Notes: generated from the sequence alone by a model not told the origin. A stretch of DNA of 64,000 nucleotides from Octopus sinensis (GCF_006345805.1 NC_043004.1:78430001-78494000), one strand, 5' to 3'. Shown: positions 6,416-56,386, counted from the stretch's first letter. A program made the numbers and translations.

Positions 6416-7913
6416 CTCATCTCCCTATACCTCGACCGCATCCTGTCCCCCTTAGTCGCAGCCCTCCCATCCCACATACACGACACCAACCACGCCCTCC
6501 GTCTCTTCAATTCCTTTTCCTTCCCTTCCAGCCCCTCACACCTCCTCTTCACTTTAGATGTAAAATCCCTGTACACAGTGATTCCCCACAATGACGGTCT
6601 CCTAGCCCTCCAACACTTCCTCGACCGTCGTCCCGACCCCACCCCCAGCACCCCCACCCTTCTCCGTTGGCCGAGCTCGTCCTCACCCTCAATTGCTTCA
6701 CGTTCGCGGGGAGGGGGGGAAACGTACCAACAGGTGTCCGGGGTCGCGATGGGAACTAGGATGGGCCCCAATTTCGCCAGTCTCTTTCTTGGCTACATTG
6801 AGGCCCAAGTGTTCTCCCAGTTCTCTGGGCCGACCCCCGAACTATACGGTCGCTATATCGACGACTGCGTAGGTGCCACCTCCCTTTCCCGTGAACTTCT
6901 CTGCCAATTCATCTCTTTCCTTTCCAACTTTCACCCCTCCCTTCAATTCACCTCCACCATCTCCAACACCTCTGTCAACTTCTTGACATCTCTCTCCGCA
7001 TCGATCACCCCTCCAGATCTCTCACCACCACCGCCTTTTTTAAACCTACGGATTCCCACCTCTATCTCAACTTCTCTTCCTCCCCCCCTTCCACACCAAA
7101 CGAGCCATCCCCTACTCCCAGTTCCTCCGCCTCCGACGTTTGTGCAGCCGCGACCAGGATTTCGAGACCCAATCTCAATACCTGGCCCGCATGTTCAGAC
7201 TCCGAGGTTACCCACCCATACTCCTCTCTGATGCCCTCACCCGCGCCCGTCGCATCGACCGCACTACCGCCCTGTTCCTTCCCCCGCCCCCACCCCCCAA
7301 CCGCACCCCCTTCCCCCTCCTTTTCCACCCCTCTACCCTACCCCTTCGTCGCAAGATACTACGTGCCTTCCGTCGCCTCCAGCTTGATCCCACCACCCGC
7401 CCATTTTCCCTAACCTACCCCTGTCCTCTTTCAAACGAGCCCGCAATCTGCGTGACCTCCTGGTCCACAGCACCCTCTCTCCTTCCCCCTCAGCCCCACA
7501 CGGATCATTCCTTGCTCTAGATCCCGCTGCAACACTTGCCCTTCATCACCAAACACACCGCTGTCACCGGCTCCAACCTGCACACTGTACGCATTAGGCA
7601 CTCCTTTACGTGCACCTCGTCTGGCCTTATTTACTGCATTAAATGCAACCTATGCGGGATGCTGTATGTAGGACAGACGGGACGCCGGTTGTCCGACCGT
7701 TTCACTGAGCACTTAAGGGACGTTCGCCTACACTCTCTTTCTCCCGTCGCACGCCACTTCCGCTCGGCCGGCCATTCCCTAGATGACATCTCAGTGTTTG
7801 GTCTCGCCCCCCACCAAGGTCGCCCACTTTCCAGGCTCCACTTGGAGCAACGCTACATCTTCACCCTACAAACTACCACCCCACACGGACTTAACACAGC
7901 CCCCTCCTCTTGA
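6416..7913 (+). CDS. Penelope-like element RT + GIY-YIG endonuclease ORF, 5'-truncated and frameshifted
   Basis: LDVKSLYT, GVAMGTRMGP, RYIDD, C-x4-C-x2-C linker (CSRSRCNTC, Neptune-like), LIYCIKC..LYVGQTGRRLSDRFTEH GIY-YIG. Several mostly -1 shifts in homopolymer runs; no in-frame stops seen in the corrected frame. GC-rich against an AT-rich background. Confidence 0.92.
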
Positions 7914-10803
7914 GATCGTTTTTTTTTTTTTTTTTTTTTTTTTTTGCACCACCACCCACACCTACCCACCCACCTGCCTCCCACACGCACACACCCCACC
8001 CACCTACCTCCCACACACACCCAACCACCTACCTCCCACACGCCTGTTCACACACACACATACGCAGACCCATTTACGTACATACATTCACACATTTAAT
8101 CACACACACTTACAGACATACTAGCACACACACTAACATACAAACCACATGCACATACACACACACATACATACATACGCACACACATACATACTTACAC
8201 ACACACACACACACACAGACATACATACACACATACACACACACATACATACGCACATACATACACACACACTCACACACACACACACCGCACGTACATA
8301 CTTCACACACACACATGCAAACATACATGTAGGCACATACATACATACATGCCCACACATGCACACCCTTACACTGAATGCACACACACATACACCTTTT
8401 GCATCCAGGCAGCCCCCCCTCTTTTCTGCTTTCCGGTTTTGGCTGATGGATCCTCGGTTCCCGCGTAGCGGGGGCGTTCGAGGGCCTTTGCGCTCGCGCG
8501 CCTTGGCGCGCGCTGGGGGCTTGGTCGGCCCTTGGGCTTGCGTTGTACTGCTTGTGCGTTGTGTGCGTGAGCGCGCTTGTGCGTGTGGGCTTGCTTCGGA
8601 TGTGCGCGTACGTATGTATGCATACATACCCACACACTCGCATGCATCCCTACCCACATACATACACGCACACCTACTCACACACACACATACACACACA
8701 TACCTGCACACACACACACATACATACATACACATACATACCTACTTCAGACATACACACACACAGACATACACCCATACACTCACACTCACACGCATAC
8801 ACACACACACATACACACGCACACGTACACATACACACACACACACACCTACATACATACATTACACTTGTATACACACACACTTACATTCATACACACA
8901 CACACCTACACAGCCATACCCTCACTCAGACACACACATCTACCTACACACACACACAAACACACACGGACACACACCCATACATACATACATCTACACA
9001 CACACGCCTACACACATACATACACACATACATAAACACACACACATACACATATACACACATACGCACACACACATATACTTATACACATGCACACACA
9101 CACACATACATACATACACCCATATACATACACACACATACCCACATACTCCTATACGCACATACATACACAAAGACATACACACTTACACACTCACACA
9201 AACATACACACACACATACTTACACACACACTCACCTGCACGCGCACACACATGCATGACAAACACCCATACACTCACACTCACATACGCACACACCAAC
9301 ATAAACACGCACACGCACACACACACCTACACTCCCACACACATACACACGCACCTACATACACACACGCACGCATACACACGCATACACACATACATTA
9401 CACACGTACACACACACCCACATACACATGCATACACACACACACAAACATGCACGGACACACCCAGACATACACACATACACCTATATACACACGCCCA
9501 CACACCTACATACACACACATATACACACGCCCACACACCGACATACACACACATACATACACACACATACACGGACACACCCACATACTTACATACATA
9601 CACCTATACACACACGCCTACACACCTACATACACACAATGCATACACACACACACATGTACGCACATACACACACATATACGCACATACATATATACCC
9701 ACACACATGCACACACACACACACATACGCACATGCATGCATGCATGCACACGCGCACACCTACACGCATACACACACACACACGCACGTACACATACAT
9801 ACATACACACACGCATACATACACCCATACACATACATGCATCCGACACACACATACATACACACTCACACATACATACACACACACTCACTCACACACC
9901 TGTATGTACGCGCACACACATGCACATACACACACTTCCCCACACCCACACGTACATACATACACACTCACACACACACCACACACACACGGACATACAT
10001 CTATGCACACACATACATACACACATACTCACATACATTCATCGGACACACTGCCACCCAGACATACACACAGACACACTCACACATCCACACACATACA
10101 TACTTACGCGCATACTCGCAGGCACGCGCACATACGCACTTGCGCCGGCTCGCGTGCATACGCGCCGCATACACCTCGCCCTGGACCTGACGAGACCTCC
10201 CGCCCGTTCCTGGGACCGTCGCGTGTCGTTGGGTTTTCCCACGCCTGTCTCCGCGGTACCACTCTTCCATCTTCCCCTCAGCTGGAGTCCTTTTTCCTTA
10301 ACCCCCCCCTTTTTCGTTACACACACGCGCACACATATACACACCTTGCCTATATATATACATCACTCTTACACACATTCAATCTACTCATTAATACCAC
10401 CACGACACTGGACACACACACACACTACTACTCAACACACGCCCCCACCCCTTCCCCTCCCTCCCTTCCTCCTTCCTTCTTTTTCTTAGTACTGACCTCG
10501 TCTGCTAGCTGACCACTAGTCTCGCCCTACCTCACACGCCTACACACAGACGCACACACTAACACACACATATTTTTTTGTTTTTTCATCTCGCCTCACA
10601 CACACACATACACACACGCACATGCACACACTCACACATACACACACATCTGTTGGGTTACCAACCTTGTCTCCACTCTTTTGCCTTTAAAAACCCACTT
10701 TGCTCTTGTTTTTCACCATGTGCAACTCGTAAACACCAGTCGTCTTTTTTCTCTTTCCCTGTTGCCCGCTCTGGGATCTTTCTTTCCTCTCTCTTCCTTC
10801 TTT

Positions 10804-10842
10804 ATGTTTCCGACGAAGAGCTCCGCTCGAAACGTCATACCT
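10804..10842 (+). ncRNA. Minimal type I hammerhead-like motif, partly degenerate
   Basis: CCGACGA(10810-16; U4C variant of CUGANGA)-A-GAGC/tcc/GCTC-GAAA-palindromic ACGT-GUC site. Stem I only partly paired (ATGTTT/ATACCT). Confidence 0.55.
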
Positions 10843-13337
10843 CCCTGCTTCCATCTCCTGAGCGCCTATTAATAATAATACTGTAATTGTTCCTGTTGTT
10901 GTTGTTTTTTTGTTTCCCTTTTGGATTAAAATTATATATATATATATATGTATTTGTGTGTGGGTGGTTGCCCCCCCCCACCACCACCACCACCTCGCTT
11001 GACAACCGATGTTGGTGTGTTTACGTCCCCATCACTTAGCAGTTCTGCAAAAGAGACCGATAGAATAAGTCCTGGGATCGATTTGCTAGACTAAAGTCAG
11101 TGTTCCAGCATGGCTGCAGTCAAATGACTGAAACAAATAAAAGAATGTATATATATACGACCAGCTTCTTTCAGTTTACATCTACCAAATCCACTCACAA
11201 GTTTTGGTCAGCTTGAGGCTATAGTTGAAGACCCTTACCCAAAGTGCCACACAGTGGTACTGAACTCAGAACCATGTGGTTGGGAAGCAAGCTCCTTACC
11301 ACACAGCCATGCAAAAAATATTTTTAGAGCAGCATATGTATATTTAAAGTAAAGCATATATTTGGGGCAGTAAATTAGTATAATTCATAGACCCTTGGTT
11401 TCCCACCCTATTATATGCTGTGGCCCCTTACATTGTTGCTGATGTGAATTGAACCTTTTATCCTTTCAAGGTTGATAAAATAAAGGACCAGAGAAATTCT
11501 GGAGTACATTTAACCAACTTATATCTTCCCTGCAAATGTATAACTGTCTGCCAATATTGGAATCAGTTTTGGTTAAAATACCAGACAAAATGCCTTATAG
11601 TATTTAATCATGGTCCTTCAAGCTCTGTGTTCACATCCTGCTGAGGTCAAAATACCCTTTTGTCCCTCTGAGGTCAGGGTATAAGTTAAATACTAGAGAT
11701 GATTTAATGATTGACACCCTCCACTAAAATTTCTGGTCCTGCACCTGTCTTAGAAACAGTTATTGTGTATAAGGGATCAGGCAGTGGAACTGGCAGAATT
11801 GTTCGAATCCTAGGCCAAATGCATTGAAACATTTCGTCTGCCTTTATGTTTGGAGTTCAAATTCTACCAAGGTTGATTTTTGACTTTCATCCTTTCGGGG
11901 TCAATAGAATAAGTACCAGCTGAGTACTGGGGTTGAAGTAATTGACTTAACCCTCACCCTTCCCCTAAAATGCTGGCCTTGTGCCAAAATTTGAAAGCTT
12001 TGTAAACAGGACAGCAAAGAAGCAGACATGTAAAGTGTTGGACAGAATAGCTTCATGATAACTAGATGAATGGCTTTGTTTGGAACAATGTGGGTAGTTA
12101 CACAGTGTGTGTGTGTGTGTGTGTGTTTAGCAGCTGTGCACTGTCTTGAATATTTGTATGCGTAATAACCACAGCTTCTAGCGCAGTGGTTCCCAACCTG
12201 TGATCTATAGGCCCCTGGTGGTCTGCCAAGTTTGTACTGGGGGTGGTGGTGGTCCATACCCTAAATTCAAAATTTCATATATATATATATATGTATATGT
12301 GTATGTATGTATATATATGTGTGTATATATATATGTATGTATGTATATATGTATATATATATGTATATATGTATGTATACATGTATGTATATGTATGTAC
12401 GTATATATATGTATGTACATATATATGTGTATGTATGTATATATATGTATATATATTTATGTGTATATATATGTATGTGTATATATATATATGTATGTGT
12501 AGAAGCATGAAGACAGGGAAAGCCCCAGGCCCATCAGGAATTACTGCAGAGATGCTCAAAATATCTGGCAGTGTCGGCTATAACCTAGTCACCCGTATAG
12601 TCAACCAGGTGATACACGAAGGAGTCATACCCAATGACTGGTGCAGCAGCATACTAGTCAACTGCTACAAAGGTAAAGGTGATGCCCTAGATACAAATAA
12701 TTACAGAGGTATCAAGCTGTTGGATCAAGTAATGAAGGTTACGGAGAGGGTCATAGCCCAACTAATTAGAGAGAGAGTTAGTTTAGATGAGATGCAGTTT
12801 GGGTTCGTGCCAGGAAAAAGTACCACTGATGCTATATTCCTGGTAAGGCAGCTGCAGGAGAATACCTAGCCAAAGATAAGCCCCTGTACCTGGCTTTCGT
12901 TGACATGGAGAAAGCTTTTGATAGGGTCCCCCGATCCCTTATCTGGTGGTCAATGAGGAAACTAGGGATAGATGAATGGCTGGTGAGGACTGTGCAAGCC
13001 ATGTACAGAGATGCCGTAAGTAAGGTTAGGGTTGGCAACATGTACACAGAAGAATTCAAAGTAGAGGTTGGGGTCCACCAGGGTTCAGTACTCAGCCCCC
13101 TCCTATTTATCATAGTACTCCAGGCAATTACGGAGGAATTCAAGACAGGCTGTCCCTGGGAGCTCCTCTACGCTGACGACCTTGCTCTTATTGCTGAGTC
13201 ACTATCAGAACTGGAGGAGAAGTTCCAGGTGTGGAAGGAGGGTTTAGAATCAAGGGGCCTTAGAGTCAACCTAGCTAAAACCGAAGTACTAATAAGTAGA
13301 AAGGTAGACAATCCACAAATATTCAGGAAGATGGCCC

Positions 13338-13469
13338 TGCTCGATCTGTAGAAAAGGTGTAGGTAGAAACTCTATAAGATGTACCCAGTGTAAGCTATGG
13401 ACACATAAGAGGTGCAGCAATGTCAAAGGTAGGCTAACTGGGAAGATAGTTTTTGTATGTGGCAGATGC
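13338..13469 (+). CDS. PHD-like C4HC3 zinc finger inside the RTE ORF
   Basis: CSIC-x10-CTQC-KLWT-H-KR-C-x14-CGRC matches C4HC3 spacing. Confidence 0.75.
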
Positions 13470-14208
13470 TCGGGAGCATTAACCTCCGAAAATCTGCAGA
13501 GAAAACAACTTCCGTCACTTTCCAGGGGGAAAAACTAGAAGTAGTTGATAGCTTCCGTTATCTAGGTGACCAAGTCAGTAGTGGGGTGGGTGCGCTGAAA
13601 GTGTAACTGCTAGAATAAGAATAGCCTGGGCAAAGTTTAGGGAGCTCTTACCTCTGCTGGTGACTAAAGGCCTCTCGCTCAGAGTAAAAGGCAGACTGTA
13701 TGATGCGTGTGTACGAACAGCCATGCTACATGGCAGCGAAACATGGGCTGTGACTGCTGAGGACATGCGTAAGCTCGTGAGGAATGAAGCCAGTATGCTC
13801 CGATGGATGTGTAATGTCAGTGTACATACTCGACAGAGCGTTAGCACCTTGAGAGAAATGTTGTACCTAAGAAGCATCAGTTGTGGTGTGCAAGAGAGAC
13901 GATTGCGCTGGTATGGTCATGTGGCGAGAATGGATGAAGATAGGTGTGTGAGAAAGTGCCAATCCCTAGCAGTTGAGGGAATCCGTGGAAGAGGTAGACC
14001 CAGGAAAACCTGGGACGAGGTGGTGAAGCACGACCTTCGAACTTTAGGCCTCACTGAGGAAATGACCAGAGACCGAGACCTTTGGAAATATTCTGTACGT
14101 GAGAAGACCAGGCAGGACAAGTGAGCCCAGCCCACTTATGAATGCCTTCCTCCCTTGGACACAAAGACCGGTTGAGGCAAGCGAAGTCGATATAGAACCT
14201 CATCCGAC

Positions 14209-14666
14209 GACAGACACCCATGCCAACCCCCCATGCTTGCGAAGACATGTTGGGGCAAGCGAAATCGAAATCGAAATCGAAACCGAATTGAACCAGCCAG
14301 GATCCCTGGCCTGGTGGTACGTAAAAAGCACTATCCGACTCGGGGCCGTGGCACGTAAAATACTCCAATGCGACCGTACGACAGGCACCCATGCCAACCC
14401 CCTTTGCTTGTGAAGACATGTTGGGGCAAGCGAAATCGAAATCGAATTGAACCAGCCAGGATCCCTGGTCTGGTGGTACGTAAAAAGCACTATCCGACTC
14501 GTGGCCGTGGGACGTAAAATACTCCAATGCGACCGTACGACAGGCACCCTTGCCAACCCCTTTGCTTGTGAAGACATGTTGGGGCAAGCGAAATCGAAAT
14601 CGAATAGAACCAGCCAGGATCCCTGGTCTGGTGGTACGTAAAAAGCACTATCCGACTCGTGGCCGA
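14209..14666 (+). repeat. Tandem repeat in the RTE 3'UTR, ~2.8 units of 159-171 bp
   Basis: Units start at 14209, 14380 and 14539. Length varies through the internal (GAAATC)n copy number. Confidence 0.9.
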
Positions 14667-15022
14667 TGCCAGCACCGCCTCGACTGGCTTCCGTGCCGGT
14701 GGCACATAAAATACACCAATCTGACCGTGGCCGTTGCCAGCCCCGCCTGGCACCTGTGCAGGTGGCACGTAAAAAGCACCCACTACACTCACGGAGTGGT
14801 TGGCGTTAGGAAGGGCATCCAGCTGTAGAAACATTGCCAAATTAGACTGGAGCCTGGTGCAGCCTTCTGGCTTCCCAGAACCCCGGTCGAACCGTCCAAC
14901 CCATGCTAGCATGGAGAACGGACGTTAAACGACGATGATGATGATGATGATGTGTATATATATATGTATGTGTATATATATGTATGTGTATATATATATG
15001 TATGTGTATATATATGTATGTG

Positions 15023-15053
<31 letters not shown>

Positions 15054-16149
15054 GTATATATATATATGTATGTGTATATATATGTATGTATGTGTGTATG
15101 TATATATATATATATAAAGTATATTAAAAGGGGTCTGTGGGAAACCTCATTTGAATAACAGGTTTGGGGAGCACTGTTCTAAGGGTCTGTTTGTATAACA
15201 TCTGCACTGTCTGGAGTATCTGTGTTTAGCATATGCCCCGTCATGGGCGTCTGTGTGATAGCTCCATCTGTAAAATGTCAGTGTGTAGCACCTAATGTGT
15301 GGGGGAGGAAAATATTTGAGAAGGGGTGGTGACTTTTTGCCAGGTGTAAGGAGGCTAAAATACAATAGATCGACAAGTACAGGTGTTTTGCTATAGAGAG
15401 AAGTTACATGGTTACTCTACATTGTTTAAAGGTGAGAGGGATGTAGAGCTGGAAAGAAAGTAATGGCAATAACAGGGCCAGAGTTAACCCTCAAGGAGCA
15501 AGAAGGTGCGCATAAGGGAATTGAGAGAGAGTGGATTCATAAAAGTGTGAGGAGAGAGTGACAAATGGTTGGAGATGAGGGTAGAGGTGAATGTAGGGTG
15601 TGAAGAACAAGGATGGTGGCAGGGCTGATGGGGAAATAGCAGTATGGAGGGGGCTAAGGTGGTAGAAATAGAAGTGGCTCAGGAAAGATGAGGGGCAAGG
15701 TGTAGGAATGGTGGAGAGATCAAGTTAGATGCAAAAACATTAAACTGAAGGATTAATCAATACATTGTATCAGAGAACATGTTTATTAAACTCTTACAAG
15801 GAGAAATATGTCAGTGACTTCGAAGTTTTAACTTGTTCACCTTTGTTAGACAGTCAAACAGAGGAGAGCAAGCTGAGACTTCGGAGTCACTATCTACCTT
15901 TTCCTTATAAAGACTCAATGAATATAGGTTCAGGCATGGTTATGTAGTAAGAAGTTTGCTTCCCAACCACACAGTTTCAGGTTCAGTCTCACTGTGTAGC
16001 AACTTGGGCAAGTGTCTTCTACTATAACTGACAGCATAGATTACAAACTTGTGGATTTTGTTGTCAAATATCTGTAAATGAAGACAACCACAATCTTATC
16101 CATGAAACTTTCAGACACACGAAGTTTGACCACCAGGATCAAAGAGCAG

Positions 16150-19211: not shown

Positions 19212-21269
19212 TCTAAATATATCTCTTATTATAAAAGGCAGATTTTATCTGCCTCCTTTTGTCTCTTATAGAAATCTACAATATAGGATTTCTTCAATTA
19301 CAATTTACCTAGCATTTTTAAGAGTAGAATGCATCGGGTCGTGCCAGGTCCAGTTTTTAAAATTTCAATCCCAATTAAGCAAAATTTAGAGAAAACTCAC
19401 ATTGTGGTGTCTAAGTCAAGTGCTTTTCTTAGTGTGGGCTACAGCACACGCACACGCACACACACACAAACGGAGCGAACTGTTTCACTGACGCTATCAC
19501 CCTAATTTCTCCTCCTTTCTCTTTGCAAGTGTGCAACGATTAAAGTGAAAATAATTCACTTTTTGTAGTGAGTGACTCTTTCACTCTGCATTCCCACTTC
19601 CTCTTTACACACATAGACACGCAAATATATAAATAAAATTGTAAGCTAACGTGTTGTGTGTGTGTGCGTGTGTGTGAGTGTGTGTGTGTGCGTGTGTGTG
19701 TGAGAGAGAGTGCGTGTGTGTGTGTGCGTGTGTGTGAGTGTGTGACAGGAAAGTTTTTTAGGACGAATATAAGACCTAAAGTATATCCAAGTAGCAGAAA
19801 GATCGCCCAAAAGTGTATATAGATATTTAAATGTATTTATATATTCATCTATACACAGATGTATGTATAATGTGTGTGTATATATTTCCATAGAGGTAAC
19901 CTTTCACTCCATACAAAGTTTTTTAGGACGAATATAAGATCTAAAGTATATCCAAGTAGCAGAAAGATCGCCCAAAAGTGTATATAGATATTTAAATGTA
20001 TTTATATATTCATCTATACACAGATGTATGTATAATGTGTGTGTATATATTTCCATAGACGTAACCATTCACTCCGCACAAAGTTTTTTAGGACGAAATA
20101 AGATCTAAAGTTATCTCTAAGTAGCACAAGATCGCCCAAAAGTGTATATAGATATATAAATGTATTTATATATTCATCTATGCACACATGTATGTATAAC
20201 GTGTGTGTATATATTTCCATAGAGGTAACCTTTCACTCCATACAAAGTTTTTTAGGACGAAAAAAGATCTAAAGTTATCTCTAAGAAACAGAAATCGCTC
20301 AAAAGTGTATATAGATATTTAAATGTATTTATATATTCATCTATACACACATGTATGTATAATGTGCGTGTATATATTTCCATAGAGGTAACCATTCAAT
20401 CCATACAAAGTTTTTTAGGACGAAAAATTATATATAAAAGAAAGGTTGTGTGTTCTGTCTACTCCGATTTAGATTCCTAACTACTCCCACATTTTGCGAT
20501 GCAGTTTAACCAAAACCGGGTATCTTATAGTCGTGATTCATATCGAGCCCTTCTGGGTATTAACGCGCGTCTACGATGAGTCTATGATTTTACAAATAAT
20601 TTACCATCATTTTTTCCATTTTAATGCATATTTTTTAAATAAAGGGAAGTAACTCTCAAACTTCACACCAATATGCGTGCTCATATGCGACGTATATCAC
20701 ATCAGCAGCATTTCCTCACCCTCCTTGCACTTGGCGAAGGCAAAATACCAGGGGATGAAAATGGTAATATTGCCATCGATTCCATTTGTACCTTTGTTAA
20801 GACGCCTTCTGATCTCAGAGATGCAGTGTTCCCAGATCTACAAGCTAATTATCAGAATATGGATTGGATTGGCCAAGGGCTATTCTGGCCCCGAGGAATA
20901 AAACTGTTCACCATATTAATGATGAAATGCTAAAACTCATTCCTGGGGAAGTCTATGTATATCAGTCTATCGATACAACTCCTGACCCAGAGGACGTCAT
21001 CAACTATCCAATAGAGGTACTCAATTCCTTTGAGCACCCCGGACTACCACCACCACCACACTTCTCAAACTTAAGTTGGTGCCCCTATAATGCTCATCAG
21101 AAATTTGGTTCCCCCAAACAATGCAATGGCACACGTTTGATCGTTAAGTCCTTATCTCCCACAGTAAACTTATATCAATATTTGCCTGAATAATCATCAT
21201 AATTCAGTGCAATCATTAACAGTACTTTCAAGCAATTCAGCCCCGAGCAACGCCGGGCAATTCTGCTAG
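19212..21269 (+). mobile_element. Composite Helitron with a PIF1 helicase fragment and internal tandem array
   Basis: A|TC 5' end (19212 or 19222). 3' hairpin CCCG-AGCAACGC-CGGG then CTAG|T at 21266-70. Helicase pieces at 20673-21190 (AILAPRN..V..IND, NYPIEVLNS, CNGTRLIV). Confidence 0.85.
19751..20425. repeat. ~165-bp tandem repeat, 4 units plus a partial one, inside the Helitron
   Basis: AAGTTTTTTAGGACG recurs at 19751, 19916, 20081, 20245 and 20408. Confidence 0.92.
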
Positions 21270-28950: not shown

Positions 28951-29782
28951 CGACAAATAAAAATAAGTAAAAGACAATTTTTGTTACTAAGTTCCAGTAG
29001 AGCGAAATTATAGGATCCAGAAATAAAGCAAATATAGTAATAGTGGACTATGGACAATCGATATCATGTAAGTAAAGCAGTGAAAAAATTTGGTAAGTAT
29101 AACTCCATAACCGAGGGAAGAGAAGGTCTGTAGCGGTACTCATGGAAATTCCATGATAAATACGAAATTTTTTAGATGGTTGTAAGTTTGTATAGAACCA
29201 TAAAAATTGGTATTCCTTTATAAATTGTATATTCTGCATTATTTTCACTTAAAAATACCTTCCAGTTCAGGATAAGGTATTGATTGAAAGAGTATAACCT
29301 TCCCATTCTCTCAGCAGTTCAGTGATTTATAAATCTAAGAGCTTCAAAATGATTTCTGAAAACATGTCACTGGTATTGTAACTTTCAACCGTATGTTAAC
29401 ATTTTTTTTAACGCTTTCTCTGATTCCCTTATCTGTTGTAAATACTCACTCTATACTCTTTGATTCATATTTCCCCTCCTACACGCTAATGCTCCCATGC
29501 TTGTTCTGCTTCTCTTAACGTCTTTGCCTTTTTGCAAGCTTATATCGTCTGTTGTCCATAGTTTATAAACAAATATTAATTTTCAAACGAGCAGACGATC
29601 AATAATTGTATGCGTTAAGTGACAGGCGATAAAAAAAAATTTAGTTCAATTAAATTAAATAAAAACTACACTTGTCATTATCCACCCATGACCACCACCA
29701 TCACCACTAGCAGCATCCACGACTATTTTGCAAAATTATTTCACATTCATTGAAAAATCTATCTTACTATCTATGATAAGCC

Positions 29783-45340: not shown

Positions 45341-46638
45341 ACAAGCTAAATGGAATATCTCATTTTCACGATTCCATTAATGACTTTTAATGATTTCGTT
45401 ATTAGTAGTGTTGCTTCTAGTTCTGTGATTCTCAGCTCTCAAAAGTGGTACCCAGGCAATTAGTTATATCACCGAGTACCCCAATAATTGCTACTTTACA
45501 TCTAATGTTATAATTAGGGTATAGTATCTCATTAGGTTTCTCATTTATGTGCCATGGTTTTCTTTTCCTTTCATGTTCATGTCAAATTTCACCAGGGAAC
45601 TAATGTCTGCTACTATACACAGTTTCTTTTCTCATTATGTCTGGCCTGATAAAGCGGCGAGCTGGCAGAAACGTTAGCACGCCGGGCGAAATGCATAGCA
45701 GTATTTTGTCTGCCGCTACATTCTGAGTTCAAATTCCGCAGAGGTCGACTTTGCCTTTCATCCTTTCGGGGTCGATATATTAAGTACCGGTTGCGTACTG
45801 GAGTAGATCTAATCGACTGGCCTCCTCCCACAAAATTTTGGGCCTTGTGCCTAGAGAAGCAAAAGATTATATCTGGCCTGATAATAGGGCGGCGAATTGG
45901 AAGAATCGTCAGTACGTCGGAGAAAATGCCCAGAAGCATTTCTTCTACTTCTTTCTCAGCAATTTTTTTCTATTTCTTTGTCAGCAATTTTTATATAAAA
46001 AACTAAAATATTTTACACAATGAAGACTTGTAACTTCCACATTCATTATCTCTTGTATGGTGTATTCAAATAATTATTGTACATCCATCTTTATTTATCG
46101 CGTGATTTTGTTTCCAAAACAACACCAAGATAAATGAATGATAAAACAGATGGGGAAAATAGGCTTCATTCACAGACCCGAAGTTATTCTGAGTTTTGTG
46201 GATGGTTGCCGGGGGGGGGGGTCATTTTTGCAGCTGGTCAAAGCAAAATCTTTGGCTGTTCGCCGACCCACATTATCACAGATCAATTCATGATGAATGT
46301 AACATGGTTCACAATTCATACTCTGTTATCCAGATCAGTGATAAATAGATCATGGATAAACAAGATAGACGTGAAAATATAAATGCAAATGTTACGAATA
46401 ATAAAAAAAAATATGGAAACTTATACAAATATTAATGATCTCATTCTCGCCTTCACACGTAGCCTACTTAATACTGTGTACTACCAGCGATGGATTGATG
46501 ACTAAGACCCACTAAACTAGCAAGTCGAATAACTAATTAGAAGCTATTTATAGTGAACCTTAACATTTCAATTAAACGTGTTTATAATGTTTAATTCGTT
46601 GATTTTGTTTCATTTTGTCTTTAGAACAGAAACTGAAC

Positions 46639-46835
46639 ATGTACAAGAGAGAAGCCATGTTGTTTGTGATGTTGATGTTGCTGCTCCTGGTAAATCCCGT
46701 GAAACTGTCAGTGTTGTCGAGCGCTAAATGTCCAATACCAATGTCGGAATGTTTGAACGATCCTGGTTGCTTGAAGGAATGGTATCACTGCAACTGTAAT
46801 CCCACTGGCACACTTTCCTTGAATGAATTTTGTAT
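46639..46835 (+). CDS. Coding exon 1 of a predicted secreted cysteine-rich peptide precursor (exon starts 46625, ATG 46639)
   Basis: Acceptor ttttgtttcattttgtctttAG at 46623-24 and donor AT|GTAAGT at 46835/36. Only one frame is open: MYKREAMLFVMLMLLLLVNPVKLSVLSSAKCPIPMSECLNDPGCLKEWYHCNCNPTGTLSLNEFC, a signal-peptide-like N-terminus plus 6 Cys. Ends in phase 2. Confidence 0.75.
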
Positions 46836-47479
46836 GTAAGTAGACATATTGTATCGAAAGTGATACGAATTCAAACAGTTTGTTCAAATATATTTATTCT
46901 CGTATTATCTTTTTATATATTTTACTTATTTCAGTTATTCTGCTGCGGTCATGCTGGGGCACCGCATTCAAGGGATTTAGTCGAGCGAATCGACCCCAGT
47001 ATGTATGTATGTATGTATGTATGTATGTATGTATGTATGTATGTATGTATGTATGTATGTATGTATGTATGTGTGCGTGTTTGTATCTGTGTTTGTCCCC
47101 CAACCACCATCTCTTGACAACCGATGTTGGTGTGTTTGCATCCCCGTAGCTTAGCTGTTCGGCAAAAGAGACTGATAGAAGAAGAACCAGGCTTACAGGG
47201 AATAAGTCCAGAGATCGATTTCTTCGACTAAAGAGTGGTACTCCAGCAAGGCCACAGTCAAATGACTGAAACAAGTAAAACAATAAAAGAATACCAGAAG
47301 ACCGTTCCGTCCACTAAACCAAGAAGGTTCTTTGAATATGTACGATGTATTTTAAGGCTAAACAGTAATTCTGTTTACGTTTGCGTAACTGAGATATTTT
47401 GGTTGGTTTATATAGCTATTGGTTTTACACTTCTTTCTATATTCTGTAACTGTCATATTATAGAAACATTTCTCATGGC

Positions 47480-50400
47480 ACCAGCATACAATTTACAGAT
47501 GCTTACATCTTTTATATTTTCCGTGAAGTTTTCACGGGCCCAGCTAGTTAATCATACACACCGTGGCTTATTTAAATTTAAGCGGTTTCCCTTCGATGTA
47601 TAAGTGGCTCCTTCGATTATTCAGCAAGTAATGGACACAATACCGGGTGATTATGATTTTGCTATCGCCTATTTAGACGGTACCCTAATAAAAAGCGAAT
47701 CACACGAACAACATGTAGGACACATAAAAAGGGTATTCGAAAAGATAAGAGAATACGGCTTCAAAATAAGTGAAGAAAATGCGAGTTCTTTCTGAAAAAA
47801 AACAGACAAACAAACAAAAAACAAACAAACAAACTAAATATTTGGGCCAGATAATAGATAAAAATAAACGGAAACTGGATCCACCTAGAACAACTGAGAT
47901 AAAAAAAAATATGCCCAATCCGAATAATGCGACTATGCTACATACCTTTTGGGATTAGTAAATTACTATCAAATTTATATCCCTGGTATACACAACGCAA
48001 GGGCCCCACTCAGGGATCTATTACAGAAAATGCAAAATGGCGGTGGACTGATAAGTGCCAGACGGCATTTGACAAATTATAAAACATTTTAACATCGAAC
48101 TTATCGTTAACACATTTTGATCCGAAGCTTGATATTATATTGGCTACAGATGCGAGAGATTACGGTGTAAGAACAGTGCTCCTGCACAAATATGACGATG
48201 GAAGTAAAAGGGCTATTGTCCGTGCGTCACGATCATTATTACCAGCTGAAAAAAAGAAGCGTTAGCAATCATATTCGGTGTGAAAAAATTCCATAGATTT
48301 ATTCATGGAAGACGTTTCTGGCTACAAACGGATCATCGCCCACTACTGTCAATATATGGTTCTTAAAAAGGAATACCAACTCACACAGCGAATAGACTAC
48401 AGCGATGGAGCACTGCATTATTCAATAATGATTACAAAATGGAATATTTACCGTCAATATAACTAGGGCATGCGGATGCTTTGTCTAGACTGATACCGAA
48501 ACACTGCGATCCATTCGAAGTTACGGTAATCGCAGCTTTAAGATCAGAAAGAGAAATAAAAAATGTAATATGGAATGTGGTACGAGAATTACCGGTGACC
48601 CTTGAAGACATAAAATGAAATGCAGAAAAAGACAAATTCATAACAGAAATGAAAAGAATACTGTGGACAGGAAAAGTAAATAGGAAGAGGACTGGTGCGA
48701 AACGAAACCAAAACGTGGAACTATACATAGAGTAGTAATAACTGAAACATTGCAAAAGAAAATGTTGAAGGAATTCTAAGTTGGACATCATGGTATTTCA
48801 ATGATGAAAGCTTTTTTAATGCGTAGCTACGTATACTGGCCAAAAAAGGATAGAGAAATCGAAAATTTAGTGAAAGGCTGCAGAGAAACGTGCCCTAGCA
48901 GAAAACGTACCGACGATAAAAAGTGAAGCAAAAATAGATATTCCATGGTTGAGACTACACATCGATTTCGCTGGTCTCTTAAACGGCTTATACTACTCAG
49001 TAGTAGTCGAAAGTTTCTCTAAATGGCAAGAAATTTGTAAATGTGAAAAGCGAACCCCCTCAACTGCGACAGACTTTCTACAAGAGCTGTTTGCGAGATT
49101 TGGCACCCCAGATGTCTGACAATGGAACGTAATTTGTGTCCTTTGAGTTTAAGAAGATTTTCAAAACGTTCACTGTAGAATATGTAACCATCCCAGATCT
49201 AACGGACAAGCAGAACGCTTTGTCGATACGTTCAAGAGAGCACTGAGAAAGTCGAATAAGGAAGTCACGGATGAGGGTTAGGGTTAGGGTTAGGGTTAAC
49301 AACAATTCTTAAGAGTATACCGTGTGGCACCAAATTCAAATACACCAGCAGGCATGTCACCAGCGGAGCTCATGTTTGCGAGAAAAATAAAATCAGTCTT
49401 CGACAAATTACTACCTAGTGAGAAAAGAAATATTACAATGGATGATACAGCAAAATATATCAAAATAGGTGAAAATATATTTGTTAGGGCGTATAAGGAC
49501 GGAAAAAAAAGTTGGGAAGATGGTGTGATTACCAAACGCACAGGAAAAGTGCTATACTTGGTAAAAGGAAGAAAAGGGGTAAACTAGAGACACAGGAACC
49601 AACTAAAAAAAAAAAGGTTCGTTAAGAGCAAACGCAAAAGAATGAAAGAACCAATGGAAAGGCTATATAATACTTACTTCCTTACTACCCACAAGGGGCT
49701 AAACACAGAGGGGACAAACAAGGTCAGACAAATGGATTAAATCGATTAGATCGACCTCAGTACGTAACTGGTACTTAATTTATCGACCCCGGAAGGATGA
49801 AAGGCAAAGCCGACCTCGTCGGAATTTGAACTCAGAAAGAAACTGCAGACGAAATACCTATTTCTTTACTACCCACAAGGGGCTAAACACAGAGGGGACA
49901 AACAAGGACAGACAAACGGATTAAGTCGATTACATTGACCCCAGTGCGTAACTGGCACTTATTTAATCGACCTCGAAAGGATGAAAGGCAAAGTCGACCT
50001 CGGCGGAATTTGAACTCAGAACGCAGCGGCAGACGAAAAACCGCTAAGCATTTCGCCCGACGTGCTAACGTTTCTGCCAGCTCGCTGCCTTCGGTTATAT
50101 GATACTTATCAAGTAGCAACACCACTACAAGTAATTGAACCCAGACGCACAAGCGAAAGATAAAGGAAATGTATGGAGTTCCTGGAAGTGAATGCCAAAC
50201 GAAAAAAATATTAAATGTGTAACTGTATGGAAAGAAAGCGGGGGTGAAGTGAACCAAAAATTTATTGCTAATAAAAAGAAATAAAATTACACTCCCTAAG
50301 AAAAAAAAAAGAAAGACTTAAAGGGCGAGATGTTATGGGGAAAATAGTAATAACGCAATACCCATCCCACGTGACGAGTGGTATTTGATTGTCGCTACAA

Positions 50401-50522
50401 ATACGGTGACGTTGAGCAGTCAGGTGAGATCAGTCGGTCATATAGATAGTCGTGTCTTACTTGTTTAACTATACTGCTATACTGGAGCGGACGTTATACC
50501 AGTCCGACAGAAGATTACAACA
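47480..50522 (+). mobile_element. Decayed Gypsy element: RT-RNaseH-integrase, PPT and 192-bp 3' LTR (50331-50522)
   Basis: THRGLFKFKRFPF, IAYLDG, LATDARDYG, GHHGI..RSYVYWP..C, LHIDFAG, NGQAERFVDTF. LTR TGTT...AACA preceded by AAAGGGCGAGA. Two SINEs inserted at 49676-50092. No 5' LTR found. Confidence 0.9.
49676..50092 (-). mobile_element. Head-to-tail family-B SINE dimer inside the Gypsy element
   Basis: The tail motif tactacccacaaggggctaaacacagagggg occurs twice (~49684 and ~49867); only one complete head. Confidence 0.8.
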
Positions 50523-51233
50523 TACACGCGCGACGGGTTTCTTTCAGCTCCGTCTACCGGATCCACTCAAAAGACTTTAGTCCATCTGAGACAATGGTGG
50601 AAGATACTTATGCAAGGTATCACACAATGGGATTGAACCGGGAATCATGTTTTTCCATACGGCCACGCCTACGTTTCTATATAGCCATTTTCTTCTTATT
50701 TGTGGAATAACATTGCTACCAATGGTTTCATGTGGAAAGAAGGTTTGCAACTTTTCAAGCGATTCACTTCAAAATGTTGATAATCACCATTTCGGAAGAA
50801 ATTCTTTCTGCATGAAACCGTTGGTTGAACTATTTAATCGACAAATAAAAAAATATATGTCCACCAATGTGGTTTTATTGTCCTCGTATTATTTTGAAAG
50901 AATTCGAATTTTGGCATGTCACAGAGTACATATAGAAAACGAAACAAAACACGAAAGATTTATATAAGCTATTTAGTTACACTATCTTAAGTATGCTTCA
51001 ATAATGAAGGAGGATTATTTTTGTTATAATGTAAATTACAAAATCAAGGTATATTGTCAAATTTTTAGAGTCGTATAACTTTAATATGTAACACTGCTGG
51101 ACTTCTAGGCAAATCCTCATCAGTAACCGTGCCTTAACAATTAACATATAATTTGTCTCTAAATTATAGGCATATATATATATGCATGTATGTATCTATA
51201 AATACATGTGTGTGCGTGTGTTTGTGTGTGTGT

Positions 51234-51297
<64 letters not shown>

Positions 51298-51335
51298 ACA
51301 CACACATTTTCATTTTGCCATTTTTCTTTCCACAG

Positions 51336-51378
51336 AATGGCTTCAGTAGTTTTGAAGAATCCACCTACTTGTTGTCCG
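51336..51378 (+). CDS. Coding exon 2 (43 nt) of the same gene
   Basis: Acceptor tttttctttccacAG and donor CCG|GTAAGA. Joining to exon 1 in phase 2 gives (I)MASVVLKNPPTCCP and ends in phase 0. Confidence 0.7.
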
Positions 51379-51515
51379 GTAAGAAAACGATATTTTTTGA
51401 CGTATCTTTTATTTTAGAGTTTTACATTTGTCTGAATAAATTAAAAATAGAAGGAAGAGGATAATATTTATCGATGCTCGTAATATTTATCGTCGTCGTC
51501 GTAATAGTAGTAGAA

Positions 51516-51575
<60 letters not shown>

Positions 51576-52039
51576 CTGATGGTGCTGGTGGTGGTGATGG
51601 ATATTTCTGTTTCTTTCATCTTTCACATACATACATTACATACGCGGATGCAAATATATACATACATATAATATATGTGTGAGTGTGTATACATGTATAT
51701 ATATATATCTACTACATATATGGGAAATTCTGTCTATCGTTTTATCGATTTTGATGAAACTTGACGCGTGAGTAGAACTCATGTCCGGAAACCTCATGGC
51801 ATATTCAGATTGTTGAAAAAAAAAATCGATAATAGGGCCCCTGAAAGGGATACTTATATATTATATATTTCATTTTAACAGCCAAGGGAAATAACCCATT
51901 CATTTTCCAAAATCATTTGGTATAAATCAAATTGAGTATACTTATTTCTTAGTACTTGAACTATTAGAGTTACTTTCGCAATTTATTCAGTACAACGCTT
52001 AAACAAGTAAATAGTATTTTCCTAAACAATAGATCCACT

Positions 52040-52137
52040 TATTTCGGTTAGTGACTTATTTTGGTTAGTGACGAATATACCAACACCAGCGCCGCTGGTA
52101 TATTCGTCACTAACCAAAATAAGTCACTAACCGAAAT
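52040..52137. repeat. ~100-bp perfect hairpin, a MITE-like remnant
   Basis: 41-bp arms ATTTCGGTTAGTGACTTATTTTGGTTAGTGACGAATATACC and its reverse complement around a short GC loop. Confidence 0.85.
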
Positions 52138-52734
52138 GCTCTGGGAACGCACAAAAGCCCCTTTCAGAGTTATTTACTTTGAACTGTTATTATCTCATAC
52201 CTGATTAGCCTGTTATTACGTCACATGCTTCACTATTTTTGTATACATACCTTATTAGTATGCTTCACTATTTTTGTATACATATCTTATTAGTATCTCC
52301 TCATGTGTTCTATATACTCTGGGAACGCATTAAAGCCCTTTTCGGGGCTACTTTATTTAAATTATTATTATCGGGTAACTAATTTCATGTTATTACATAA
52401 CTGACTTCACAATTTGGGTATTCATAACTTATTGGGAATTCTTAAAAACAAGATACTGTGTAAGACAGTTTGGTATTCTTTGTAAATGCACAAAAATCGT
52501 TTTTAGGGCTACATACTCTTTCTTCTGCTGGCCTGCTCGCTTAGCCAGCGGGGTGGCGTGATTCGAAGGCTAAAACAATGCGAACGCATTGTGACCAGCG
52601 ATGTGTAACAACATCTGATGGTCTGGTCGGTCACGTGATATATATATATATATATCCAAATATAGCTGGCTACGTATCAAAGTTAATGCAGATACATCAT
52701 GAAAAAGCAAATTAATTGCAATATTTGCCCGCAG

Positions 52735-52810
52735 ATAATATCTCTTGTGGATGTGCGTTGTCTAAAAACACAAAAATATGTCAGAAGCAGACGAAAATCA
52801 TTCAGCAGCG
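52735..52810 (+). CDS. Candidate coding exon 3 (76 nt)
   Basis: Acceptor taattgcaatatttgcccgcAG and donor GCG|GTGACT (imperfect). Phase 0 to 1, open: IISLVDVRCLKTQKYVRSRRKSFSS. It abuts SINE-derived sequence, so it is less certain. Confidence 0.4.
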
Positions 52811-53052
52811 GTGACTAATCGGTTCCGGTACTTATTTTAAAAGTCGTATTTATTCTATCAGTCTCTTTTGCCGAACAGCTAAATTATAAGTTACAAGGAT
52901 GTAAACAAACAACACCGAAAATACGAAATTACAATAATTTCAATGTCATGATTAGCGAATGCGAAACCGGTCGACAAAGATAATATAAGATATATAAAAA
53001 AATATATTAAAACTATGTAAAATGTGTGCATTTTCCTTCTAACATATATATA

Positions 53053-53120
<68 letters not shown>

Positions 53121-53365
53121 ATATATATATATTGCATTACAATTCATCACGTGGGATAATTGAAATTCCTCCTTTTTTTGTTACTATATGTGTGTGTGTG
53201 TATATATATATATATATAAGGGGTTTTCAATAGTTTCCTTCTAACAAATTCGCACACAGTATTGCTTGGCCTGAGGACATTTGCCCAAGGTGTTCTGCAA
53301 TGGGACTGAACCCGAAACCACAGGTTTCGATGCAACCATCTTAACCACACTGCTATGCCCACACA

Positions 53366-54213
53366 TTGCGTTGCGTCAAAAGTTTTGCAATATTTCGCTA
53401 ACTTTATTCATCACGCTACAGCAAAAGCAGGCAAGCATTCGAAGTAGAGGTCATCGTGTATCACCGTCTGAAGCCACCTATCTGTCAATCCGTTTGATCG
53501 CGCACTGATACCAGTTGTTGTCCTTCGAGGCGAAGAACTCCTTAACTGAAGCTTCTTGGTTGACGAAGCATCGCGAACGCAGGAAATGAGCCATGGATCG
53601 GAACAGATAATAATCCGAGGGAGGTAGGTCAGGACTCTATGTTAGGTGTGGCATTAGTTAGATTCTCTCAGGTTTCTGGGGTTTATTCCGGGTTATTGGA
53701 GCGGAATGAGGTTTTGCGTTTTCTTCGGGATACTGGTTGGCATTGATAGTTCGATTGTCCGGGACGAACGTGTAGTGAATTATCCCCTCATAATTCCACC
53801 AAACGCAGAGCATCTCCTTGTGGTCAAAACGCCCGCGTTTGGCGACAGTTTCCGGAAGCTGGCTCTTGCTAATCTCCTGCTTCATGCACGATGGCATTGC
53901 GGTAAAATATATACCTCTTTCGGATTATCACTTGTTCCGGTCTATGGCTCACTTCCTACGCTTGCGACACTTAGTCAATCAAGAGGAAGTAGAAGCTTCA
54001 GTGAAAGAGTTCTTCATTTCGAAGAGCAAGAATTGGTATCAGTGTGGGATCAAAGAACTGGCAAAAAGGTCGCTTCAGACGGTGCAAAAAAGGTGCAAAA
54101 ATAGAAAGGCGGCTTCAGACGGACTCCATTTTGAATGCTTGGCAGCTTTTGTTGTAATTTAACGAATAACGCAAATAAGTTTCCAATTTATTGCAAAACT
54201 TTTGACTCAACAC
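53366..54213. mobile_element. Two mariner 3' halves joined in inverted orientation, with a TIR at each outer end
   Basis: Minus-strand C-terminus at 53385-53870 (KEMLCVWWNYEGII, SPDLPPSDYYLFRSMAHFL); plus-strand C-terminus at 53905-54150 (SDYHLFRSMAHFL..NWYQCGI); GTCAAAAGTTTTGCAATA at both ends. Confidence 0.8.
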
Positions 54214-54772
54214 TGTTTATTTACAAACTTTTGCTGAGTGGAAAAAATTTAAACATCTACCCTGCAAACAAGCAGTGACATTTATTTAGGGTGTGGAGAA
54301 TAAGTACTCGACACAAGCAAGAATCCTAATCTACAAAATTATATTAAATACATTTATTTAGTAAATTACCTAATTACTATTATCCAATTATTGAATTAAA
54401 AAGAAAACAGGACTTAACCCTTTACATGTTTTGAAGATTGAATTCAGCTGCAGTAATTTACTCATGCAACAGAATTTGCTATACAAAAAATACCAAGAAA
54501 ATGTGATAGGACCCCAATTTCTAATTTACTTGTTGTGTCTGAAGAAAGGGAGCAGAGTCCATGACCCTAGTAAATCCTTTTTGACAACTGTTAATGTTCC
54601 GCTTATCACTAACATAAAATATATTATTGATTCTGTATTTTAGTGTTATAATTAACTTGGTTTATTATTTATTTATTTATTTCTTCATTTATTCTTTTAT
54701 TTGTTTCAGTTGTTGGACAGCGGCTATCTTGGGCCCCTGTATAATTCTTATTGATATCTTTCGCGAACCTTC

Positions 54773-54807
<35 letters not shown>

Positions 54808-54814
54808 AACAATA

Positions 54815-54816
54815 AC

Positions 54817-54868
<52 letters not shown>

Positions 54869-55402
54869 GCCCTGATGCAGTACCAGGCAGTGGCTCTCAT
54901 GGCTTCTAATCTGATTGGAAGTGTTATCATGTACATTGCTTTGTTTTGGTATAAAAGATGGGCCACAGCAAATGTTATGCTCAATACCACAGATTTGCTT
55001 GTCAGTTGTTTGACCATAACCTGTTGAGCATGTTCCCTTGGTCTCTGACGATATGCACATCTCTGATCACGAGCAGAAGTAGTGGCAGAGCATCATAGCC
55101 ATGTGTTGAGAGGGATTCTTTGGGGTTTGAATAATTCACCTCTGAAAACACGGTTGTTTCGTTCAACATTTTTAAACAACCCTTATTCAAGGACCTTTTG
55201 AGCGGGAGTGGGCTACTCAACCTGAAGAAATTTCTAACTGGGCCCCACCTGCAAGGTCATGTGCTGTTTATCTTGATATGAGATCACCATGTCGCGCACA
55301 TATGGTCGTGATGCATGTGCTTGGTGTACCCTTATCAGACGGGTAGTCATGACGGGTATACTGGGCTTCGTATATTTTATCTCAGTGTCACTTTGATGGC
55401 TG
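54815..55402 (-). mobile_element. Same retroposon family, copy 2
   Basis: Reverse complement of 29817-30415, with a similar 5' limit at gccatcaaagtgacactg. Confidence 0.8.
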
Positions 55403-55486
55403 CTTGGTATAAAACCACAAGATCCCTGTTTTTCTAATAAACTAAGAACACGTATTGTATGGATTACATTACCTTCGAGTTTGTTT

Positions 55487-55540
<54 letters not shown>

Positions 55541-55548
55541 AGAGAGAT

Positions 55549-55590
<42 letters not shown>

Positions 55591-55769
55591 AGAATGCGAT
55601 GAAATAATGTAAGAAATATTTAATAAGTCAGTGATTACAATTTAACGAACAAAAGTTACGAAGGAAAATTAAGCAAAAAATATCATAAAACTTACACAAC
55701 TTAGGATTGAAATATGTAAATATAATCAGCGTCGGACAGGAAACCGCCCGGAGGACGGTCTTTCTGCTT

Positions 55770-55860
<91 letters not shown>

Positions 55861-55959
55861 TAACAACAACGATAACAACAACAACAACAATAGTCATAAT
55901 GATAATTTTATCTAACCAGAACAAACTAAAGATTTAAATTTAGTGTTTTATTATTTCAG

Positions 55960-56027
55960 ACTTAGCTGTAGCAGTAGAAGAACTGAAAGAAAGCCAGTTC
56001 CTGTGTCTTTTTGGCTTTGCCTACTAA
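55960..56027 (+). CDS. Candidate last coding exon
   Basis: Acceptor tgttttattatttcAG at 55958-59. In phase 1 it reads (D)LAVAVEELKESQFLCLFGFAY-TAA(56025-27). If exon 3 is skipped it reads T-stop. AATAAA at 56153 and 56159. Confidence 0.45.
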
Positions 56028-56386
56028 ATCTTGAAGACGTCGAGTAAAAGCTCCAATATCTTACATAAGAGTCGAGCAACTTTAAATTGATTTATTTTAG
56101 ATCTGTGTGAACAAATCGATGCTGCAGTTGATTGATTCGAGAAAAAATGAAAAATAAAAATAAATTATTGACGATTGTTTTTGATTTTCATTGTTGCTAT
56201 TGTAATAAATTATCGCATGGAGAATGGTAAAATTGGTGATGCGATGAACAAAGAGTTCTGAGATAAAAGCGCAATTCGAGGATAAGTATTTCTGGATAGG
56301 AGTCCACTTTGCGGCATTGTAGACAAATGTCTTCTGACGAAGACTGTATTCCACCAGCTTTGTGAGCGAGATTTGGGAGACAGAAA

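Follow-up and report, generated by a model that had tools for sequence, protein, structure and literature searches.

A probable three-coding-exon gene for a small secreted eight-cysteine peptide in Octopus, and its tandem paralogue

Cone-snail toxins, host-defence peptides and some pheromones combine a conserved signal peptide with a hypervariable mature region whose cysteines stay fixed. The fold of attractin, a water-borne pheromone (PDB 1T50), is a disulfide-stapled antiparallel helical hairpin, with the signature (I/L)IEECKTS on helix 2. In Aplysia, this secreted mollusc peptide has 58 residues and three disulfides (PMC3484142). A gene that can be compared with these systems lies in a stretch of 64,000 nucleotides from Octopus sinensis (GCF_006345805.1, NC_043004.1:78430001-78494000; the whole stretch is referred to as the window). 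Most probably, the gene is intact, has three coding exons and encodes a secreted peptide with about 52 residues and four disulfides, a member of a family that is restricted to Octopus, tandemly duplicated and rapidly diverging; from the sequence comparisons we put the probability of this reading at roughly 0.75. The coding exons would be exon 1 (46625-46835), exon 2 (51336-51378) and a terminal exon (55960 to about 56185), all on the plus strand, and the product would be an 81-residue prepropeptide, MYKRE...NPPTCCPT. A preliminary description of the locus, which had placed a fourth exon between the last two and arrived at a 127-residue precursor, is partly supported: all of its sequence features are present, but the conserved product differs from its headline product.

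The window is collinear with the reference O. vulgaris locus on OX597821.1 (GCA_951406725.2; positions on it are given below as L001), with a substitution divergence of about 1% over 11.7 kb and many insertions and deletions. About 23.6 kb downstream of the window gene (gene A) there is a tandem paralogue, B, on the reference locus. The family comparisons were made with gene A, this one paralogue and two O. bimaculoides proteins, A0A0L8IEN1 and A0A0L8IDK4. Gene A and paralogue B have a common structure, consisting of a phase-2 intron after Cys 6, a 43-nucleotide exon with a CC pair and a terminal exon that is mostly 3' untranslated region (UTR).

Exon 1 follows an acceptor, tttag/AACAG (a slash marks the junction), and begins with a 14-nucleotide 5'UTR segment. 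Its coding part (46639-46835, 197 nucleotides, with the ATG at 46639) comprises 65 codons plus 2 nucleotides, encodes the signal peptide and Cys 1-6, and ends at the donor TAT/GTAAGT. The corresponding exon of B (L001 70252-70465) has the same acceptor, 13 of the 14 5'UTR nucleotides, the start MYKREAMLF and all six cysteines at identical spacing. The two exons are 86% identical across the 5'UTR and signal part and far less similar beyond, the mature part aligning with a glocal z-score of 3.1 (z-scores here and below compare the native query with shuffled queries). Both O. bimaculoides proteins start at the exon-1 methionine and share the exon-1 cysteine framework. By inspection, the signal region is made up of an n-region, MYKRE, a 13-residue hydrophobic core, AMLFVMLMLLLLV, and then NPVKLSVLSSA/K; the n- and h-regions are conserved in all family members and the c-region is not. 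Upstream of the exon, on the same strand, there is a TATA-like motif (TATAA, 46583-46587) within the block cgtRtttataatgttt (46577-46592), 52 nucleotides before the ATG. The block and its flanks are also conserved before exon 1 of B, 65 nucleotides before the ATG (TATAA at L001 70197-70201, block at 70191-70206). Because it is found upstream of both paralogues, this block may be the proximal promoter of exon 1, and read-through transcripts may be the only ones to use the acceptor at 46624/46625.

The CC pair (Cys 7-8) is supplied by exon 2, which has 43 nucleotides, enters in phase 2 and leaves in phase 0, and encodes (I)MASVVLKNPPTCCP between the acceptor tttttctttccacag and the donor CCG/GTAAGA. 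When this exon and its 15-nucleotide flanks were aligned to the 9.8 kb that follow exon 1 of B, they landed exactly on an exon with 50 of 73 positions identical (z = 10.9, 0/300 shuffles). This exon 2 of B (L001 74366-74408, about 3.9 kb downstream of its exon 1) again has 43 nucleotides and an identical 15-nucleotide acceptor, and encodes (L)TSWAVLNQVPTCC before a TAG codon and a GT donor. In both genes, the exon ends with (V/P)PTCC, and the segment that it encodes is covered by A0A0L8IEN1 (...LTSGLALGMVPSCCED).

The terminal exon (55960-56185), which begins after the acceptor ttattatttcag, has a counterpart in B at L001 76205-76429, with 140 of 211 positions identical (66%; z = 5.2, 0/300 shuffles). 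The acceptor is conserved between the two, as is the poly(A)-signal block, AAAAATAAAAA(T/C)AAA preceded by AGTTGATT. In gene A, this block holds two AATAAA signals in series (56153-56158 and 56159-56164), as the preliminary description had noted, and the 3' end at about 56185 was placed from their positions. When the exon is joined straight to exon 2, it contributes ACT TAG, that is, one threonine and a stop (55963-55965), and the remainder is 3'UTR. The second codon of the phase-0 terminal exon is a stop in B as well (CTT TAA), where the 80-residue product already ends at the last codon of exon 2. A0A0L8IEN1 (82 residues) ends with ...VPSCCED, so that the full-length family members stop 0-2 residues past the CC pair, and the share of one residue plus a stop that the terminal exon would contribute fits the ...E/D end of A0A0L8IEN1. 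Because the family ends right after CC and the terminal exons of both paralogues reach a stop at codon 2, the 81-residue form is the conserved product. It was listed in the preliminary description, down to its eight cysteines and TCCPT end, as what would result from skipping the additional exon, and it is this form that fits the family. The more general proposal made there, a spliced gene for a small secreted cysteine-rich peptide, has held up. Each of the three exons is kept in B.

The cysteine spacing (6, 5, 6, 1, 11, 12, 0) is identical in gene A, paralogue B and A0A0L8IEN1, and its first five intervals are found in A0A0L8IDK4, a 67-residue, exon-1-only model whose last residue is a read-through leucine. 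(The 66-residue read-through product of exon 1 of gene A has no database record.) The framework C-x6-C-x5-C-x6-C-x-C-x11-C-x12-CC is thus invariant across the family, and no match to it was found among curated families. A profile built from two family sequences recovered A0A0L8IEN1 with E = 1.9e-25 and A0A0L8IDK4 with E = 2.6e-16, the alignment with the former covering 98% of the 81-residue model. When 1.84 billion representative proteins were searched exhaustively with HMMER, the only credible relatives were CAI9727362.1 (an O. vulgaris annotation that is considered below) and these two proteins. Three further matches (E = 7.6e-5 to 5.6e-4), to a 3420-residue repeat protein, an EF-hand-like protein and a Cys-repeat protein, were judged to be due to chance. 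A word-indexed protein search gave no extra relatives, and no paper that mentions the family accessions or peptide strings was found in the literature. The family has so far been seen only in Octopus, a restriction that holds as far as current protein collections show, and in O. vulgaris it includes two or more tandem paralogues. The preliminary description had suggested looking for relatives that conserve the cysteines, and such relatives exist: A0A0L8IEN1, A0A0L8IDK4 and paralogue B share the framework. Its word "unrecognised" is half true, since exon 1 is already contained in CAI9727362.1, albeit mis-joined, and two relatives are in UniProt; those relatives are, on the other hand, uncharacterised.

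What would such a peptide look like, and what might it do? The protein would consist of a secretory signal (MYKRE, the 13-residue core and a c-region ending in SSA), an eight-cysteine domain of about 52 residues and a tail of 0-2 residues. The signal peptide would be removed in the endoplasmic reticulum, four disulfides would form, and the resulting compact peptide would be secreted and act outside the cell. The relatives are alike in their MYKRE/MLQRE signal peptides and cysteine spacing, and unannotated B has the same split between exons 1 and 2 as gene A. They differ in most of the rest: amino-acid identity is 64-87% between signal peptides and 22-35% between mature parts when the cysteines are excluded, and the mature parts carry net charges anywhere from -3 to +6. 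Between gene A and B, the proportions of synonymous (pS) and non-synonymous (pN) differences are 0.36 and 0.16 in the signal region; beyond the signal, pN is 0.44 and pS is about 0.8, which is saturated. Divergence is therefore uneven within a single exon (46588-46835 against L001 70215-70465): the upstream flank, 5'UTR and signal retain about 86% DNA identity, and in the mature-peptide part of exon 1 nothing but the cysteine codons is kept, saturation extending even to synonymous sites. Faster evolution of the mature peptide could have produced this pattern, and so could gene conversion at the 5' end; two copies are too few to tell them apart. Because the signal and 5'UTR are conserved and the mature region is free apart from its cysteines, by analogy the peptide is most likely an externally directed ligand, with an exocrine, defence or chemical-communication role, rather than a conserved hormone.

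The conotoxin superfamilies offer the closest analogy for this mode of evolution. They, too, are small secreted disulfide-rich peptides with a conserved signal and a hypervariable mature part, encoded by duplicated genes in which the coding sequence is spread over a few small exons separated by long introns. They differ from the octopus family in that no sequence similarity of the latter to any curated family was found and in that the octopus peptides have no evident propeptide region. To our knowledge, the CC-ending cysteine framework matches no conotoxin framework. It is possible, if doubtful, that the family represents an undescribed octopus-restricted class of secreted eight-cysteine peptides, with its own disulfide framework and fold and conotoxin-like diversification, whose members would serve as exocrine toxins, in defence, or as chemical signals passed through water or by contact.

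Attractin resembles the family in another way: four of its cysteines are spaced x6, x5, x6, as are Cys 1-4 of the family, and the helices modelled at low confidence over Cys 1-4 are reminiscent of its helical hairpin. Attractin has six cysteines, however, versus eight in the family, and IEECKTS is replaced by (W/L)Y-x-C-x-C-x-P (the segments at this position are LKEWYHCNCNP, SSLWYKCKCSP, SIAWYNCQCSP and VKDLYRCKCKP). Homology to attractin was rejected, given an E-value of 0.45, an hhalign probability of 0.8%, a mature-only profile without a match and the absence of the signature motif. An EGF-like domain is similar in having six cysteines, including a C-x-C, and loop lengths roughly in the EGF range, and A0A0L8IDK4 is automatically named "EGF-like domain-containing" in UniProt. 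The name is not borne out: no Pfam EGF model was matched at E = 10 by any of the four members, the PROSITE patterns EGF_1 and EGF_2 were unmatched, and the N-terminal half of the family is predicted to be helical, not beta.

More general searches were similarly negative. The 127-residue model and the four family members matched nothing in Pfam at E <= 10 except TrbK (E = 0.37), which was judged to be a chance match. Searching PDB sequences with the full-length profile returned only non-significant matches (attractin at E = 0.45, the EGF-family entry 4z80 at 0.89 and a zinc finger at 5.9), and with the mature-only profile none at E <= 10. AlphaFold2 models of A0A0L8IEN1 (made from a 4-sequence alignment) and of the exon-1 mature domain have a predicted local distance difference test (pLDDT) score of 55.7 and 65.9, respectively. 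Both have two short helices over Cys 1-4, where the pLDDT is 56-78, and Foldseek found no match in the PDB for either of these low-confidence models.

Among the alternatives to the three-exon gene, the one that survives best, though it is improbable, is the four-exon precursor of the preliminary description. Here, a 127-residue chain would be cut at a furin-type site, RSRR(K), into a nine-cysteine and a one-cysteine chain linked by a disulfide, either as the main product or as a regulated isoform. The additional exon 3 (52735-52810, plus strand) has 76 nucleotides and encodes IISLVDVRCLKTQKYVRSRRKSFSS, with the acceptor ...tatttgcccgcag and the donor GCG/GTGACT. As had been described, AG acceptors and GT donors are found at all of the exons, and the coding segments of 197, 43, 76 and 68 nucleotides (the last being 55960-56027) connect in phases 2, 0 and 1; together, these 384 nucleotides are open throughout and translate exactly to the chain that was quoted, with 10 cysteines and RSRRK. 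Exon 3 is unique sequence, not derived from a repeat, and its splice sites are among the better ones in the 4.6-kb intron in which it lies: 14 of 260 AG acceptors and 7 of 252 GT donors score as high or higher, with a crude generic matrix whose frequencies follow the metazoan consensus. The same intron, however, includes 414 AG..GT segments of 30-300 nucleotides that are open in phase 0. Segments in which both sites are as good as those of exon 3 are expected 0.6 times by chance, and one was seen, exon 3 itself.

Moreover, exon 3 is not shared by the paralogue. Neither tblastn (which returned the orthologous site only) nor blastn detected a counterpart in 9.8 kb of B, and glocal alignment to B gave z = -1.1 with flanks and -0.7 for the exon alone. 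The acceptor has a weak pyrimidine tract, and a fragment of a SINE-like (short interspersed nuclear element-like) dispersed repeat (52817-52917) begins 6 nucleotides past the donor; copies or fragments of this repeat, 75-97% identical, occur at six other places in the window and at six non-orthologous places in L001. Nor is the frame in which the terminal exon would be read after exon 3 conserved: it gives LAVAVEELKESQFLCLFGFAY and a stop in gene A and an unrelated 50-codon open reading frame in B. The family members terminate right past CC. RSRRK occurs in exon 3 only, the other members having no basic cluster after the signal peptide, and the four-exon product alone requires an odd number of cysteines per chain. 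Because they are carried by exon 3, the 127-residue chain, RSRRK and Cys 9 and 10 all rest on an exon that is indistinguishable from chance, and the claim of a precursor cut at RSRR into two chains is left unsupported. Exon 3, and hence the furin site and two-chain maturation, appears from these comparisons to be outside the conserved product; at most, it may be a lineage-specific cryptic or alternative exon. That gene A gained such an extra exon, leading to an alternative isoform processed by a convertase, is less likely still than the undescribed peptide class considered above.

Decidedly improbable is the alternative embodied in the reference annotation, a 103-residue model in which the donor of exon 1 is joined to an exon about 25 kb downstream, outside the window, and exon 2 is not used. 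The protein, CAI9727362.1 (A0AA36B5J9 in UniProt), is called a "hypothetical predicted protein" of O. vulgaris and is present in both NCBI and UniProt. It is the sole database protein that matches the 127-residue model directly, with an identity to gene A that is limited to exon 1: residues 20-84 are 100% identical to the exon 1 product. In its favor, the annotation comes from a pipeline that combines lines of evidence, Iso-Seq and RNA-seq data among them (PRJNA718058, PRJNA791920, PRJNA547720 and E-MTAB-3957; PMC10700109). The model (L001 10001-70263) is assembled from 29050-29092, exon 1 (via the acceptor at 46624/46625), L001 54394-54447 and L001 70252-70263. Its last 12 nucleotides (AAC AGA AAC TGA) are the 5'UTR of paralogue B, and because it terminates there, the model looks chimeric, as if by read-through or joining of the tandem genes. 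It also loses the conserved CC exon and is left with an odd number of cysteines (seven), whereas A0A0L8IEN1 supports the joining of exon 1 to exon 2.

At its other end, the reference model places 19 further residues before the signal peptide through an upstream exon (29050-29092, plus strand; MDNRYHVSKAVKKF, donor G/GTAAGT) that is spliced to 46625. Because these residues would precede the signal peptide, the upstream exon, if real, is probably 5'UTR. No similarity was detectable between the upstream exons of gene A and B. The neighboring annotated gene (76 residues, L001 70424 onward) starts at an out-of-frame ATG within exon 1 of B. It does not correspond to exons 1, 2 and terminal of B read out of frame, as that reading gives 79 residues. 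The 80-residue product of B is itself absent from the reference annotation. Both tandem paralogues are thus mis-joined in the reference.

It is highly improbable that exon 2 is instead the last exon, with polyadenylation at the AATAAA at 51435-51440, to give a product of 92 residues ending with TCCPVRKRYFLTYLLF and a stop. This signal lies 57 nucleotides past exon 2, and translation continuing beyond the donor would meet no stop for 13 codons. However, B retains both the exon-2 donor (G/GTA) and, further downstream, a terminal exon with its own poly(A) block, and has no AATAAA at the matching place; the hydrophobic basic tail of the read-through product has no counterpart in A0A0L8IEN1. Finally, a silent or decaying duplicate without a functional product, which would agree with the lack of a transcript-derived protein identical to the 81- or 127-residue product in a collection of 5.8 billion proteins and with the lack of any paper found to mention the locus, is just as hard to credit, since the reading frame is intact, none of the eight cysteines or the splice sites has been lost, nor has the poly(A) signal, the differences from the reference are synonymous only, and small genes are often missing from protein collections.

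The three-exon gene for a secreted eight-cysteine peptide is therefore preferred, and several points nonetheless weigh against it. Its splice junctions were placed by sequence comparison, and the reference has the exon-1 donor spliced to a far-off exon in place of exon 2, a junction that may have evidence underlying it. The family comparison rests on one paralogue and two proteins of one further species. Between gene A and the O. vulgaris reference there are two synonymous and no non-synonymous differences, but at about 1% divergence the comparison of window and reference has no power to reveal constraint. The cleavage site of the signal peptide is not obviously conserved, the AlphaFold models have low confidence (pLDDT 55.7 and 65.9), and the functional class is drawn solely from the evolutionary pattern.

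Why does a gene of this kind matter? Genes for small secreted peptides are the class that is most often missed or mis-joined in large, repeat-rich genomes, and corrected models are directly useful here, since the O. vulgaris reference has neither of the tandem copies right. A fixed cysteine scaffold combined with fast divergence of the mature part makes the family a reasonable candidate in the search for cephalopod toxins, host-defence peptides and chemical signals. An insulin-like or toxin-like two-chain precursor is unsupported. What remains is a lineage-specific orphan peptide, useful to have described and unsurprising to a specialist.

Besides gene A, no other evidence for protein-coding sequence was seen in the scans of the window. 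Six long open reading frames (154-217 residues) outside the main microsatellite tracts contained nothing in Pfam; no Rfam family reached its gathering score anywhere in the window, and a tRNA scan of it was empty. A 1.4-kb CA-rich microsatellite tract (8655-10100) gives rise to spurious long open reading frames of up to 787 residues, and no Pfam domains were found in the reading frames near it. The tract lies within a region (6000-16000) of raised G+C content (0.43-0.54) and strong C-over-G skew. Introns 1 and 2 of gene A contain SINE-like dispersed repeats at 46999-47300, 49669-50042 and, as noted above, 52817-52917, with many copies in the window and in L001; the second of these consists of two tandem 184-bp copies. 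Two longer tandem repeats are found elsewhere in the window, one at 19750-20425 (165 bp, 4.1 copies, 93% matches) and the other at 14272-14665 (159 bp, 2.5 copies, 97% matches).

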